Of a DNA stretch of 64,000 nt, positions 2,830 through 10,363 are shown in pieces (position 1 is the first letter of the stretch; each line of letters starts with the position of its first letter). The DNA is from Hyphochytrium catenoides. Taxonomy: Eukaryota > Protista > Hyphochytriomycota. Below the pieces are notes generated by a model that saw only the letters and a list, made by a program, of their open reading frames with translations, was not told the origin of the DNA and did no database searches. Position numbers and translations under genes: made by a program. Where the stretch lies: NCBI GenBank assembly GCA_900088475.1, contig FLMG01003999.1, positions 62,001 through 126,000 on the forward strand, written 5' to 3'.

Positions 2830-5800
2830 CTAGATGGAGTTTTGAACGACCTCGTACTCCGCTGTTTTTCGAGCGCTTCCATGCGCTTTAGGCGCCATAG
2901 GATCGAACAGGGCCTGGATTTCTTCCAGAGAAAGACCCTTGGTCTCAGGTAGATAGCGGTATAAGTAGACAAAGCCTGTAACGCTATCGTTAGATCTGGC
3001 ATCACTACCCAGCAATAGTCTTCGCTCACCTAGCGCGGCGACCGAACAGTAGACCCAGAAGGCATTGAGGGACCGGGAGAGTGAAAGAAATGTGAAAGCC
3101 ATAATTAGATTTGCTATCCAGTTCACTGTCGTAGTGACGCTGTTCCCAATAGAACGAGCATGAAGGGAGAATATTTCGCTGTTTATAGTCCACGGCATTG
3201 GCCCTAACAATTACCAGCTGATGTGAGCGGTCAAGAGATAGAGTCAGTGTGTGTTTATCTGTCCTTACCCATTCCAGGTGCGAAGAAAGCTAGAAAGAGG
3301 AAGAGAAGGGCAAAGATAGCCCAGCCGAAGGCTTTAGAGTCCTTCGGACAATCTAAATAGTGCCACTGGTCACCAGGGCAGTCAAACTTCGCCTCGGACC
3401 TATTGGTAGTGCCTGCGAGGCACAGTCCAGAGACATCTGCACAAGACAGAAGCTAAGTATGGCCAGTAGTACGCTGGGTTGTTCTTTGCATTCTTACTTG
3501 ACGTGTGACAGTAGCCGCAGTGCACATCAGAGACGCAACCAAAACAGCTTTGATACGGGGAGCACTTATCGTAGCCCACGACCACCTCCGATGAGCGATC
3601 GGCCTGGTAGAACGCTCCGCCCAGAAGGAAAAGCACAATCACCACTCCTCCCAAGCTGGCAAGGGTTAGCCTCCGACGGCCGAGTCTGAGGACAAAGAGG
3701 GCCAGCGAGGGCAACGGTTGAACAACGATTTTATCTCCAAAAGACCATACCACTTCTCAAGAAGAGGAGTACATAGCGAGGGCAACGGCTCAACAACGAT
3801 TTTATCTGCACAAGACCATACCACTTCAAGAAAAGGAGTACATATGCAGAGGCCCAAGCCGCTCTTACAGAGAATGGACAGATTGAGAGGAGCGGTTTAG
3901 CGACGGAAATCCTTCGGAAGACTAAAGGGTAGAATAGCAGTTTACCTGTCGACCAGATAGATACCTAACAGGGTGAATAGGAAGTTGCTAAAAGCGACAA
4001 CCGCGGAAAGCCAAATGGCTGTCTTCTGATTGGTGAATCCTGCCATTTGAAGGATGGTTGCCCCATAATACATAAGAGTATTGATCCCGCAAAACTGCTG
4101 CAGAGCCTGCACAGATTAATGGGAAAGAGTCCAAGGCTGATTATCATCTGTTTTAAATAAAAAGAATATAACTATACTGGCCAATGGAGTACCTGCAAGG
4201 TACACCCCAAATACAGCGCTGACATGAAGGAAGAGGAGTAGAAGAGCTCGCGGAAAGACTTCTGGTGCTCCCTTTGACCAAACGAAGCCTTGATCTCTTC
4301 AACTTCTTGTCCAACATCTGCCTTGCCCCTTACTTTCTGTAGCACCAGTCTGTTAAGGATGTTAGAGACCTCTGCTGAATAAAGAGGAGAGGAGAGTATT
4401 ACCTTGCATCGTCTTCGCGCTCGTTTAAAATAAGCCATCTGGGAGACTCTGCCGTGCGAGGGGGTGGGCAGTGAGATCATTGAGACAAAGCACTATTCCA
4501 GAGGTCACGCAGCTAGCAGTACCTGGTAGGAATATGAAGAGGAGAAATTGTCCTAACGATGGCAAAGCAGAAAGGCCCAGCATCAATCGCCAGCTATGCG
4601 GGACATCAGCCAGGGCGCCAGTTACGATGCTAGCTATAAACTGTCCACCTTTGGGGATAATAAATCAACACTAGATTTAGCAAAAGGAACCGACTCACAC
4701 TAGAACTCCACAAGCGAATATAACAGCACTCCTAGATTGGCGGGAGAAGCGCTATAAACAGAAACCACTTACTTCGGAGATGGGAACATCTCTCTATTCA
4801 TGCGTGACCATAAGACAGCCCGAAGCCGCAGTGGGGATAGATAAGAGAGTCAACTAGTAGAATAGACGTACCAGTGATGAACACATTGTTAAGCGTGACA
4901 AGGGACCCTCTAGTCTCTGCCGAAGTCAGATGGGCGAGATGAAGGGAACCGTAGGGATGTGAGTCTGCTGCTGCCTTTAAACTTGGGCAAGCGGTCTCAC
5001 CTGCCGTAGATATCTCTGAAATGTATACTGGAACTACGACCAGACAAGATTTGAAGAGCAAAGGTCAGCTACTCGTCAGAGGGCAGGACGAAGAGACCTT
5101 TTACCTGTCATGGAGGAGACTCCCACTGCCAGGCCCACAATCCACCTTCCACTAACAAGCCAAGCTACTGTCCTCGCCGTTCCCATCCAGAGGCCACCTG
5201 TCAGACGACACGAGTCCCGTCACTAATGGAACCCTCGATCTTTAGGTCCCAATCTATTTCCATAAATCTGACGTGTAACCAGCCTTTCTTCGCCCTGAGA
5301 ACTACTACTCTTCCTGTCAATCTATCTGCAAACGGGAGTGCTCATGGTGCTAATATCTAGCTCCTACCCATACCAAGAGTAAAAGTCAAAGAAGAAGCAA
5401 GAATGGAGAAGCGGCGGCCAAAAATTGAGTTGAGCAGTCCACCCGCCACAGCGCCGACGATAGCTCCAACGATGGTGATTGAGACCACGAGCTCCTTCTT
5501 CTCATCAGAGAGATCAAACTCTTCAGGCGAAGCCAAGAGGACCAGAGCACCAGATATCACGCCCTGTTTGTGCCCACGAGTGTTGAATATCAGACTCAGA
5601 CAAAGGAGCAGGAAAGGACTTCATTTGCGCAGAGTATACCGTGTCATAGCCGAACATAAAGCCTCCCATGGCAGAACTGACAGTGAGTAGATAGAGAAAG
5701 CCCTGGCTTTGAGGAGGATCGAGGGTGCCCAGGCCCCTCACTTCATGAACGATAACCTCATCTCCAGTGGAACGGGTGGACTTATCAGCGAGAACGGCGG

Positions 5801-5840
5801 TGTCGCCATCTTCGGCCGGCGTTGCAGTCTTAGAAGTCAT
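2830..5840 (-). CDS. MFS sugar porter, myo-inositol transporter-like (HMIT/INT type), multi-exon
   Basis: Spliced fragments give sugar-porter motifs: GGFMFGYDTG-VISGAL, FGRRFSIL, VPVYISEIS..ETRGSLVTLN, LVDRLGRRRLTL, GPMPWTINSEIF, YLPETKGLSLEEI. A Cys-rich loop (CSPYQSCFGCVSDVHCGYC) matches the HMIT/INT type. ATG at 5840, TAG at 2830-2832. Confidence 0.9.
3704..3844. repeat. Two-copy ~71-bp tandem duplication inside a transporter intron
   Basis: agcgagggcaacgg..aacaacgattttatct..a.aagaccataccacttc..aagaa.aggagtacat starts at 3704 and again at 3775. Confidence 0.9.
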
Positions 5841-6964: not shown

Positions 6965-9900
6965 CTAAGCCGAGCCATCTTCAGCCTCCGGACTTTGAGC
7001 TAAGTAGACTAACTGCCGTGGGTTCAGCTGGAAGCGCGCGCCTTTCAACCTTAAACATCGGTGAAACTCGACTATCTCTAGCCCATGCGACAGAGAGTCA
7101 GGATGGTATGCTTCTCCCTTTAAGGTGTAGCTCTGTCCTGTCGCTTTTTCTTGGCCGTCGCTAGGCAGGATGGTGTACGAGCAGTTTCCTATAATCGACC
7201 GCTCGTAGATGACCAGTCTCCCATAGCAGGAGTCGACCTCGAAGCTTATTTTCTCAGGACTAATCTGCATCTTCTCCAAGTCTCTGTAGTTCTGGTCGCC
7301 AAAACCTATACCTCGGAAGGCTCGCGCATCTCCATACCGCTTCTCTTGAGCAGTCATTTGAACATTAGAGCAGGAGACATGCCAAGGCGAGTAGAATCGC
7401 TGCAGAGTAGTGTCTCCGAGTTTGGGTACGAAGTTAACCTCCAGCGGCGCCAATAAGCCAAAAGAGTTAGCAATGCCGTTAACATCCCAGCCGCCCACCT
7501 CCTCAATGTCTAGCAAGATGACAAAGTCCGCGGCCCGCTTCGAGACTTCCTGAAGAAGCTGATTTCGTAGCGCCGCTGCTTTCCCTGTAGGCGTTCGACT
7601 GCCCTCAAACATAATCCTTGAGACGCGGTCGTTCCTTCTGACCCAAGAAGAAATGATCTTCTCCTCAAAGCCTGACGAGCCTTCTTCTAAAATAACAACC
7701 GAATAGCTCTTGAATCTTCTGCCGGTCCTCTCTAGACGTGCAACGTTATATTCATAGCTAAAGGCCGAGTTTGGAGTATCCGTCAGTATCAGACCAAAAA
7801 CCACAGAGAGCTCTCGCATTCGATTGAAGCCCAGTGCTTGAGTCTTGCCCATGTCATCGGTCTCTGAACCAGCTGCGCTCAGAAATGGCTCAAAGCCGTC
7901 TCTGTCATCTCTGCCCAAAGAAGCCAATTCCTTGGTGGTAACGTAGCCCTTCGTGTCACAAGAGAAGAGGCAATGACTCCTAAAGCGCCGAATACCTTCG
8001 CCAGCAAAGCCGAGGAGAGTCTTCTCGAAGTCTCGAAGACTCTCATCGTCCCGCATAGAAAAAAACTTCGCATGATCGTGCATGTAGTAGCAAAACATCT
8101 TCCACTCCTTCACATTCAGATACCCACCACCGCGGTACTCAGTATAGTACTCCCACGACAGCTGCCGCCCAGCGCTGGACCCTAGCTTGGCCATGTTTCG
8201 GTGCATAAACAGCACCTGTCTCATAGGATCAAACTGGACCATGGTATTGCCGCAGAACTTGCCTTCTACTATCTTCCCAGCCGTTCCTGGATAGTCCATC
8301 ATGAAGAAGGGAGTACGGCTCTTCATCCATGCCAGCCTAAACATATCCTTGTCACCCCAGGTGAAATAGGGGAAAACATGACTGTTTTTTACGAAGAACT
8401 CTAGGTACTTCAGTGCCTTGCTACAGCGGCGCCGGTCTACAACTAGCTGTCCGCTCTCTTGTTCGTAACTCTCGGAGTAGTCCAGGTCCAACATCTTCCA
8501 AAGAATACTCTGCGCATCAATGTCGGCAAACATGAAGTTTTCAACATTCCAATAATCAGGCCAGAAGATGGCGCCGTTGTTCTGATACTCAAGGCTGTCG
8601 AAGAGGTATTCCGGATTCCTGACTGGAAAACTGTCCGCGTCCAGCAGGACCAGTTGATCAAAGGAGCTATGAACAACAGCATAAGGCTTGATAAGGAAGC
8701 CCTTTAGTTGATATGATGTGCTGTCTACAACACGGAAAGTGACATTGTGGTACGCAGAGGCTAGGAGGTTGGTGACCGTCGGGTTGCGAGTAAGCTCGTC
8801 GTCCATGGACCATACTTCAATGGGCAAAGTGCATTTGTAGGACATAAGAAGCCTGAACAAACTGTACGCGTTGAGCCAAATGTCTTCATGGACGCAGACA
8901 ACGATGCCGCGGTTTACCTTTGCAGTTTGAGTTAGCTTAGATGCACCCACGGCTTCAGAATCATAGAACCCCACGGTCATGGCGAATCTCCGAACAGCTC
9001 GAGAAAATTTCATCAGGTCAGGCACAAAGTTGCATTCGAAGTGCCTGAAGGACTTGCAGCCATGTGGAGTGAAGCCAAATGATTCCTGAGTTTCCTCGTT
9101 GTAAAACTCACAGTACCCAGACTGAGAAAAGACGGGGTCGCTACAATTCGCGTCAAGATAGCTCCGCTGATGAAGCGGATTGCAATCCAAGGTGCGGCGC
9201 AAGCCTCGACACTTCAAAGCTCTGGCGTTATTTTCAAAGAGTTGAATCGCCTCTTCATAGTCTTGGACGATGCGGAAGCGGTTCCAGTACCAAGTCAAAG
9301 GATCTTGACAAGACGCGTTACCACGGGCAGTTGTCTGGTTGAGGTGGAGACGGTAAAGAATACTTTGTTCGGCGTTGTAGTACTCACACCAGCCATGGAA
9401 GGGAAGCTGGAAAGAGACATCACAGGTGAGATCTCTTTGGGGGACGCGGATCTGTGCTCGTTTATCCAGCGCTCTGAGGCCCACGCAAGAGAAGCTTCTC
9501 TTACTCCGCACGTTTTCATACTCTGCCTGGGAAGAGAGGGCATAAGTGGCGGTCGGTGTTGCTGCGCCTTCTCCGTCTGTACGCAGTAATCCTTCGCATG
9601 TGAAAATGGCATCCGTGCCAACAGTAGCAGTCGCTTGAAACTTGTAAAGCTTATCGTTGATATCTTTGTACTCGCAGTACCCCGTGCCAACCGTGTAGTG
9701 TTTGCAAGGAGCATCCAGGGCAGGAACCCGGCTACCGGGATAAGAGGTCGCGTCCCAGCCACGGTACCCAATACATTCGAAGCCTCCACCGCCTTCGCGA
9801 AAGACCCGGAGTTTCTCCAAGCTTTCAACCACCTCGTACTTGATGGAGGGTAAGAAGCTCAGTAGATCCCTGCAGCGGAAAGGACCGGTTCGCTCCTCAC

Positions 9901-10363
9901 AGGTCTGACCCAACACGAGTATTGACTGGTTACTTCTTAGGTCCGCGAACTCGCAGTAGCCAGAGCGTTTCTTTGAGACGATGGCATCACAAGGTAAATC
10001 TTCTAAGGGGTTGCGGGGATGATAGCGCTGACAATGACTAGTCCCGCGCCAAGCGACACATTGGAAGTGTGGAGTGTGCCAAAAGCGGCTAAGATCTGAC
10101 TCAGAAGATATAATGAGGGCAGTCTGCTGAAGAGAGGGAGTTTCTAAATAGAGGTTGTCGGGGCTGTGCAGTTCTAAGGATAACCCCAGAAAAATAACAA
10201 CCAGGCCCCCCAACAAGAGGAGCAGCACCCATATCCGAAGAGGAAGTCGACCAAGGAGAGCCAGAATGCAGCTACCAATCTTCTTCGCGTATTGTTGCCA
10301 TAAAGATCCAGGCCGTGGACCTTGAGAGAGCCTCCTGTACCGGAGAGGAGAACTTGGACTCAT
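6965..10363 (-). CDS. GT71 (MNN2/MNN5-like) alpha-mannosyltransferase, type II membrane, with 4 N-terminal Cys-rich repeats and a C-terminal CAP59/GT69-like domain; intronless
   Basis: Single 1132-aa ORF with an N-terminal TM segment (aa ~43-63). GT71 motifs: RGIVVC, LPIEVW, IKPYAVVHSSFDQLVLLDADSFPVRNPEYLF, GAIFWPDYW, EQESGQLVVDR, GDKDMFRLAW, GNTMVQFDP..FMHRN. Confidence 0.9.
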   Translation of the reverse strand: MSPSSPLRYRRLSQGPRPGSLWQQYAKKIGSCILALLGRLPLRIWVLLLLLGGLVVIFLGLSLELHSPDNLYLETPSLQQTALIISSESDLSRFWHTPHFQCVAWRGTSHCQRYHPRNPLEDLPCDAIVSKKRSGYCEFADLRSNQSILVLGQTCEERTGPFRCRDLLSFLPSIKYEVVESLEKLRVFREGGGGFECIGYRGWDATSYPGSRVPALDAPCKHYTVGTGYCEYKDINDKLYKFQATATVGTDAIFTCEGLLRTDGEGAATPTATYALSSQAEYENVRSKRSFSCVGLRALDKRAQIRVPQRDLTCDVSFQLPFHGWCEYYNAEQSILYRLHLNQTTARGNASCQDPLTWYWNRFRIVQDYEEAIQLFENNARALKCRGLRRTLDCNPLHQRSYLDANCSDPVFSQSGYCEFYNEETQESFGFTPHGCKSFRHFECNFVPDLMKFSRAVRRFAMTVGFYDSEAVGASKLTQTAKVNRGIVVCVHEDIWLNAYSLFRLLMSYKCTLPIEVWSMDDELTRNPTVTNLLASAYHNVTFRVVDSTSYQLKGFLIKPYAVVHSSFDQLVLLDADSFPVRNPEYLFDSLEYQNNGAIFWPDYWNVENFMFADIDAQSILWKMLDLDYSESYEQESGQLVVDRRRCSKALKYLEFFVKNSHVFPYFTWGDKDMFRLAWMKSRTPFFMMDYPGTAGKIVEGKFCGNTMVQFDPMRQVLFMHRNMAKLGSSAGRQLSWEYYTEYRGGGYLNVKEWKMFCYYMHDHAKFFSMRDDESLRDFEKTLLGFAGEGIRRFRSHCLFSCDTKGYVTTKELASLGRDDRDGFEPFLSAAGSETDDMGKTQALGFNRMRELSVVFGLILTDTPNSAFSYEYNVARLERTGRRFKSYSVVILEEGSSGFEEKIISSWVRRNDRVSRIMFEGSRTPTGKAAALRNQLLQEVSKRAADFVILLDIEEVGGWDVNGIANSFGLLAPLEVNFVPKLGDTTLQRFYSPWHVSCSNVQMTAQEKRYGDARAFRGIGFGDQNYRDLEKMQISPEKISFEVDSCYGRLVIYERSIIGNCSYTILPSDGQEKATGQSYTLKGEAYHPDSLSHGLEIVEFHRCLRLKGARFQLNPRQLVYLAQSPEAEDGSA

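Follow-up and report, generated by a model that had tools for sequence, protein, structure and literature searches.

Does one protein of the hyphochytrid Hyphochytrium catenoides combine two working glycosyltransferases, or has one of its two catalytic folds been turned to another use? The question is posed by a gene on the minus strand of a 64,000-nucleotide stretch of contig FLMG01003999.1 (positions 62,001 to 126,000, the whole of which is called the window here). Its product carries a glycosyltransferase family 71 (GT71) module followed by a domain resembling the CAP59_mtransfer family. An earlier reading of the bare sequence, referred to here as the original prediction, proposed either a bifunctional enzyme or a GT71 enzyme with a catalytically dead second fold; the evidence collected below leans towards the dead fold for the window copy, without proving it. 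Because the GT71 motifs are kept while the second domain has suffered losses at its most conserved positions, the likeliest reading, to which we assign a probability of roughly 0.6, is that of one active GT71 combined with a non-catalytic, pseudo-glycosyltransferase GT-A domain in one protein. The features on which the argument draws, in window coordinates, are the following.

6965..10363, minus strand: the whole gene, an intron-free open reading frame (ORF) of 1132 residues from the ORF list, with a TAG stop at 6965-6967 and an in-frame stop upstream of the ATG
10175..10234, minus strand: predicted membrane anchor (residues 44-63), the lone hydrophobic segment, after a basic tail, by Kyte-Doolittle hydropathy
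9023..10066, minus strand: stem of four Cys-rich repeats of ~90 residues each (residues 100-447), from the sequence and from repeated N-terminal matches to its paralogs
7904..8917, minus strand: putative GT71 (Mannosyl_trans3) catalytic module (residues 483-820), from PF11051, identity to oomycete proteins and conserved positions
8633..8641, minus strand: GT71 DxD motif D575-A-D577, intact, both Asp residues being 100% conserved in 37 other long GT71 relatives (mostly oomycete)
6998..7858, minus strand: second domain, CAP59_mtransfer-like and of predicted GT-A type (residues 836-1122), from an independent hidden Markov model (HMM), PF11735-matching relatives, an AlphaFold2 model and its GT-A fold
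7664..7687, minus strand: EEGSSGFE (residues 893-900), where the family has E-N-D-S-x-D-x-T; E893 and S896 kept, N894E, D895G, D898G and T900E changed
7502..7510, minus strand: degenerate DxD motif D952-I-E954, the first Asp kept and the second (99% Asp in relatives) replaced by Glu
7217..7228, minus strand: C-Y-G-R (residues 1046-1049), where the family has C-F-G-G; G1049R is also found in the paralog C2954
7073..7081, minus strand: L1095-E1096-I1097, against C-E-H in the family; Ile replaces a His that all 105 relatives (100%) possess

All of the peptide strings quoted in the original prediction are present in the translation of this ORF, which runs through its 1132 codons with zero internal stops. 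Hydropathy analysis returned a 19-residue Kyte-Doolittle maximum of 2.73 at residue 44, with the next segment at 1.11; since this single anchor comes after a basic tail, the sequence suggests a type-II topology for the product, with the N-terminus inside and the catalytic part in the lumen. The N-terminal region produced repeated matches to the paralogs described below (E 1e-51 to 1e-70). The Cys-rich stem repeats, which fill the interval between anchor and GT71, are common to all paralogs, and their copy number varies.

The GT71 module scores 105.1 bits on the Pfam family PF11051 (Mannosyl_trans3, CAZy GT71; E 5.6e-30), for which the cut-off is 22. The match spans residues 485-712 (nucleotides 8228-8911) and profile positions 2-273 of 273, so that the gathering cut-off is passed full-length; with its DxD kept, this is the intact-looking GT71 domain with an LDAD motif that had been recognized from the letters alone. 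Oomycete proteins of 640-1150 residues (from Phytophthora, Thraustotheca, Aphanomyces, Plasmopara and others) are its nearest named relatives, with 34-44% identity; PF11051 is their only annotation, and a C-terminal extension beyond the PF11051 core is conserved with them too. An alignment with the 37 long relatives, from which the fused homologue P0151 described below was left out, yielded 79 positions conserved at 92% or more, and the window protein keeps 63 of these. Retained motifs are D575-A-D577, FWPD, EQESGQ, GDKD.FR.AW, CG..MVQ.D and H721-R-N; the sole change at an invariant charged residue is D583N, which two paralogs have as well. With its motifs and most invariant positions kept, the GT71 half looks catalytically competent, as far as sequence can tell. 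The crystal structure of Mnt2p, the first for GT71, comprises a GT-A domain and a C-terminal subdomain peculiar to the family, which makes up the acceptor site (PMC13756512), and the conserved region of residues 483-820 is long enough for both subdomains. A phmmer search of the GT71 half against the PDB sequences returned no match, the Mnt2p structure (2026) being outside that set or too distant. Among the oomycete proteins, P0152 (Thraustotheca clavata THRCLA_03598, 1150 residues) contains tandem GT71-like stretches at residues 200-464 and 767-1078, a different kind of glycosyltransferase duplication that took place inside the GT71 family.

What, then, is the second domain? Direct searches said little. 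Pfam scans of the whole protein and of its C-terminal 311 residues alone gave no PF11735 (CAP59_mtransfer) match to it even at E<=10, the C-terminal part matching no Pfam family at all at this limit, and the PF11735 gathering cut-off (28.8 bits) was not reached directly. With the same 311 residues, NCBIfam returned only a chance-level match to PgaC (GT2; E 0.05), and a search of the PDB sequences returned none. A word search with residues 820-1132 among full-length-sized proteins found no match, the proteome of the organism itself evidently lying outside that collection. The single match to a word search with the C-terminal 311 residues was P0001, a metagenomic protein of 373 residues that consists of its own membrane anchor and a homologue of the second domain, and that has DSD and CEH where the window protein has DIE and LEI.

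An exhaustive profile search seeded with the window domain and P0001 opened up the family: 1404 cluster representatives were reached at E<=1e-3, and the stricter limit of E<=1e-10 left 445. PF11735 is matched by 50 of 62 aligned relatives at E<=1e-3 and by 55 of 109 aligned members at E<=1e-6, approximately the gathering level; PF00535 is matched by one. The second domain alone retrieved P0015 (E 9e-12) and P0032 (E 1e-10), on the scale of 1.8e9 sequences, and both lie above the PF11735 cut-off, with 29.3 and 40.1 bits, respectively. An independent HMM built from 60 relatives, with the window protein and P0001 excluded, matched residues 836-1122 (envelope 829-1125) and covered positions 9-239 of its 242. 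Its E of 4.7e-40 for a library size of 1.8e9 puts the match far outside chance, and the extent agrees with the boundaries first proposed (nucleotides ~7820-6980, residues ~845-1125). The order of CAP59 blocks given in the original prediction matches the consensus of both the 62- and the 109-sequence alignments: E-N-D-S-x-D-x-T, A..RN, DxD...GW..DGIA.SFG, YD..AFR, V.SCFGG..IY, CEH and NP. A lead from the ESM Atlas agrees with the CAP59-type assignment. Thus, the CAP59-like label is supported by profile homology and fold, with the limit that PF11735 is not matched directly; the sequence data support homology of the second domain to the CAP59_mtransfer family by a transitive link through the profile. 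Named relatives come from the centrohelid Pterocystis and the ichthyosporean Sphaeroforma, the others being metagenomic, and giant viruses and phages are abundant among the matches in the Atlas and in BFVD. A PF11735 search of the H. catenoides genome gave no match; control genomes were equally blank, and the search is hence uninformative.

The structural evidence points in the same direction. AlphaFold2, supplied with the 109-sequence alignment, modelled the second domain with a mean predicted local distance difference test score (pLDDT) of 84.7 and a predicted template modelling (TM) score of 0.85; a model from a 2-sequence alignment (pLDDT 32) was unusable and was discarded. A Foldseek search of the PDB gave 219 matches at E<=1e-3, the top ones all GT-A, with probability 1.00 for Mnn9, COLGALT1, PcManGT, LH3, GlfT2, GalNAc-Ts, TarP and SpsA. 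In a Foldseek-independent search (VIA), the closest solved structure was Mnn9 (Z 17.8, root mean square deviation 3.1 Å over 224 residues); mimivirus R699 scored Z 16.6, and 140 chains had Z>=8. The best match in BFVD was a Marseillevirus glycosyltransferase (E 1e-17, TM 0.69/0.71), and at the sequence level the family profile reaches the N-terminal GT-A domain (GT1) of COLGALT1 with E 4e-6. As modelled, the second domain is a GT-A fold, the fold that the original prediction had expected of it. The E-H dyad of the family falls at the N-terminus of the last helix of the model, a placement which, we presume, would suit the 'xED' position known from GT-A enzymes as well. GT69 has itself been predicted to be GT-A (PMC8476585), and no GT69 structure is present among the PDB structural matches. 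Compared with stand-alone relatives, the domain has two insertions, at residues 970-994 and 1066-1094 (nucleotides ~7382-7456 and ~7082-7168), both modelled with pLDDT 53-60; the latter directly precedes the degenerate (C)EH position.

Given that the fold is predicted to be retained, we asked how much of the family signature the domain preserves. Among 26 columns conserved at 88% or more in the 105 relatives, the window copy keeps 16, compared with 20 in the paralog C499 and 24 in the stand-alone P0001; the signature formed by E-N-D-S-x-D-x-T, DxD, F-G-G and C-E-H is not found as a set in the window copy. The positions changed in the window copy are as follows.

R861T
N894E and D895G: both also in P0001 and C499
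D898G: 99% Asp in relatives
T900E: 97% Thr in relatives
I904: 90% Leu in relatives, a conservative Leu-to-Ile change, also in C499
D954E: 99% Asp in relatives, the second Asp of the DxD motif
F1047Y
G1049R: 94% Gly in relatives
H1097I: 100% His in the 105 relatives

Beside these 10 changes in 26, the window copy also has R925P and C1095L. Kept are E893, S896, R933, N934, D952, G963, D1012, S1045, Y1053, Y1063, E1096 and N1114-P1115, and the hydrophobic-core or structural positions G845 and F884 are likewise conserved. The three motifs described as degenerate from the letters alone, EEGS, DIE and LEI, lie by coordinates at residues 893-896, 952-954 and 1095-1097. They do not carry equal weight. 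The change from ENDS to EEGS was rejected as a sign of inactivation: P0001, the stand-alone relative closest to it, and C499 share the change and otherwise look catalytically intact, and it is therefore a trait of the subfamily and not evidence of death. Degeneracy holds for D954E and for C1095L/H1097I, to which D898G, T900E, R861T, R925P and G1049R are added. The fused domains group as a single clade of the family tree (support 0.77), sister to P0001 and P0003 (0.91), and they have the longest root-to-tip distances, 2.3-2.6 against a median of 1.5.

These residues bear on whether the protein is a true bifunctional enzyme, with both glycosyltransferase modules active and forming two linkages, or adding two sugars, on the same glycan; DIE would then serve as a variant DxD, and the missing His would be compensated elsewhere. 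The fully retained and confidently modelled fold speaks for such an enzyme, as do the preserved E893, R933, N934, D952, D1012 and E1096, the conservative nature of D954E, and the presence of the two-GT-A polymerases K4CP and PmHS2 among the structural and sequence matches. H1097I, however, falls in a column that is His throughout the relatives, D898G and D954E fall in columns of 99% Asp, G1049R alters the FGG loop, and the branch is long. In Mnn9, the His that ligands the metal (Mn) is indispensable, and its loss abolishes activity (PMC3787745); we rejected the equation of H1097 with Mnn9 H389, however, as unproven, the alignment ranges suggesting that H389 lies nearer the last strand of the domain. 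On balance, we regard a bifunctional window protein as possible but rather unlikely.

Whether the losses are peculiar to this copy could be judged from its paralogs. Searches of the H. catenoides genome (61.0 Mb, 4759 contigs) located six loci, the window copy included, with the architecture of Cys-rich repeats, GT71 and CAP59-like domain.

C3031, the window copy: second domain with DIE and LEI
C499: second domain with DSD and TEH intact; frame shifted by one extra base within the GT71 half
C2954: assembly gap in the second domain; AEI; ~43% identity to the window copy
C3331: second domain with ESD and CES
C3655: locus cut by the contig end
C1131: second-domain DxD and CEH unrecognizable

Among the paralogs, DSD together with E-H is retained in the second domain of C499 alone. 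The extra base of C499 (GGACAG-G-CTTTTG, at ~178,390; L008 ~4390, minus strand) lies between ESGQ and LLIDLRR of the GT71 half, and the two parts are otherwise long open frames of 814 and 537 residues. An intron was rejected as the cause of the break, which is a single extra base; the frameshift marks a pseudogene of very recent origin or else an error of the assembly. Since both C499 and P0001 retain DSD and E-H, the ancestral fusion was probably bifunctional, and we consider bifunctionality plausible for an ancestral or C499-type form, and less so for the window copy. In C2954, a run of N (L003 ~1490-1520) falls exactly around the DxD of the second domain. The sixth and more divergent paralog (C1131:54225-58229; L021 2226-6230, plus strand) is an open frame of 1335 residues in which GT71 occupies residues 631-966 and is followed by a CAP59-like domain seen as three weak HMM fragments. 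All six loci read as long intron-free frames; the genome of H. catenoides averages 3.64 introns per gene (PMC5795050).

The paralogs also inform the view that the C-terminal 300 residues are a functionless remnant, drifting neutrally towards loss or belonging to a dying gene. The absence of several invariant residues would be expected of such a remnant, and elsewhere in the set the second domain of C1131 is far more eroded and C499 has its frameshift of 1 nucleotide. Yet 311 codons of the window copy are free of stops, the HMM match and the AlphaFold2 confidence are high, and G845, F884, G963, S1045, Y1053, Y1063 and N1114-P1115 are conserved. The loss of the His is common to C2954 at only ~43% identity, and the domain has thus stayed recognizable through a long divergence. 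Because G1049R and H1097I are both present in C2954, these changes are older than the duplication that separated it from the window copy; with both frames open and the structural signature kept at this identity, the domain appears to have been retained after the loss, which argues against free decay. We consider a decaying remnant very unlikely.

We rate as more improbable still the idea that the fusion is an artefact of the gene model, in which adjacent GT71 and CAP59-like genes would happen to share one frame while being expressed each on its own. The second domain does occur by itself in relatives elsewhere (P0001, P0003). Those relatives, however, have their own N-terminal anchor, whereas the fused domain has no second hydrophobic segment; no stop separates GT71 from the second domain, and the continuous frame recurs in the paralogs and in an independent Logan contig.

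That contig, from run SRR28521184, encodes P0151, the only fusion of GT71 and a CAP59-like domain that we retrieved outside this genome; it ends at the contig end. Within the genome, the family profile found no free-standing CAP59-like gene. No CAP59-like domain is present in the 37 other long GT71 relatives and no GT71 domain in the 150 best CAP59-like relatives, in line with the expectation that the fusion is not a common annotated architecture, and literature searches on GT71 with GT69 and on CAP59 with oomycetes found no description of it. GT71 followed by a CAP59-type domain therefore appears to be a new combination of known parts, and it seems to be restricted to a single stramenopile lineage that has received little study. 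The genome of H. catenoides has been reported to contain insertions of nucleocytoplasmic large DNA viruses (NCLDV); giant viruses contribute many members to the CAP59-like family.

Taken together, a model for the window protein emerges in which a single catalytic GT71 is combined with a non-catalytic GT-A domain. The protein would be a membrane glycosyltransferase of type II in the secretory pathway, presumably in the Golgi; from its N-terminus on, it would have a short tail in the cytosol, one anchor, four Cys-rich repeats forming the lumenal stem, GT71 and a C-terminal GT-A domain of CAP59 descent. Chemistry would be performed by the GT71 module, which belongs to an alpha-mannosyltransferase family and would presumably use mannose. 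The second domain is predicted to keep its fold, together with some residues of the ligand-binding signature (E893, R933-N934, D952, D1012 and E1096) after losing the second Asp of the DxD, the His of the E-H dyad, D898, T900, R861, R925 and G1049; on this model it would be inactive and would help as a structural, oligomerization or glycan/nucleotide-sugar-binding module, in the manner of COLGALT1 GT1. The latter is non-catalytic, is essential for folding, and binds Ca2+ and UDP-Gal (PMC12003778).

Several considerations weigh against this model. Replacement of Asp by Glu at residue 954 is conservative, and non-canonical acidic motifs occur in a number of GT-A enzymes, for instance Glu-Asp-Asp in COLGALT1 GT2 (PMC12003778). 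Retention of 16 of the 26 near-invariant positions, the first Asp of the DxD among them, would be compatible with residual or altered activity. Any catalytic role of H1097 in the CAP59-like family is presumptive. Finally, the expression of the whole ORF as one protein is a prediction from the continuity of its frame.

Comparison with characterized systems places the protein between several of them. The members of GT71 (Mnn1, Mnt2 and Mnn2 of yeast; the oomycete proteins annotated as 'nucleotide-diphospho-sugar transferase') resemble it in the full Pfam match, the DxD, the type-II topology and, for the oomycete proteins, the Cys-rich stem; they differ behind GT71, where all of the 37 other long relatives lack a CAP59-like domain. 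With CAP59_mtransfer (PF11735) and GT69, represented by the Cryptococcus alpha-1,3-mannosyltransferases Cmt1/Cap59 and by protist, giant-virus and phage relatives, the second domain shares the block order, profile homology and the GT-A fold; unlike them, it follows another glycosyltransferase without an anchor of its own and is altered at 10 of 26 near-invariant positions. COLGALT1/GLT25D1 and LH3/PLOD3 likewise have two GT-A-type domains per chain, one of them catalytic, the matching non-catalytic status in the window protein being the one we infer; order and catalytic partner differ in COLGALT1, the window protein having GT71 first and the degenerate domain last, and it is not an orthologue. 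The E. coli K4 chondroitin polymerase K4CP, the Pasteurella heparosan synthase PmHS2 and LARGE also combine two GT-A modules in one polypeptide, and the ancestral or C499-type form may work as they do; both of their sites, however, keep the catalytic residues, which the window copy does not, and there is no specific sequence relationship to them beyond the GT-A clan (E 0.002-0.007). Yeast Mnn9 (GT62), finally, is a GT-A-fold, type-II mannosyltransferase of the Golgi in which a DxD carboxylate and a His hold Mn2+ (PMC3787745); it shares 10-12% identity with the second domain and belongs to another CAZy family, and its H389 is at most a putative equivalent of H1097.

Both glycosyltransferase families, and proteins with two GT-A domains, were already known; GT71 and a CAP59-type domain in this order occur in no named protein that we retrieved. 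The six loci, with second domains ranging from intact to almost unrecognizable, make up a compact series for the passage of a catalytic GT-A domain into a non-catalytic module. One could speculate further that they represent an undescribed dual-glycosyltransferase line: GT71 and a CAP59-type enzyme would have been fused once in the hyphochytrid lineage as a two-site polymerase, both sites being active in the C499 type, and window-type duplicates would have turned the second site into a regulatory module that binds glycan or donor. We hold this scenario to be unlikely; if true, the paralogs would be a natural record of the route from enzyme to pseudoenzyme within one genome. The fusion may point to a chemistry of mannan or cell-wall glycans that is peculiar to the hyphochytrid lineage. 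Beyond this lineage, the family of ~1400 cluster representatives, which extends over protists, giant viruses and phages, lies at or below the threshold of Pfam CAP59_mtransfer and is largely unannotated.

Just downstream of the gene, at window positions 5523-5840 on the minus strand, a short ORF contains a GFMFGYDT-type string like that of sugar transporters of the major facilitator superfamily (MFS); it probably represents a single exon belonging to an adjacent gene.

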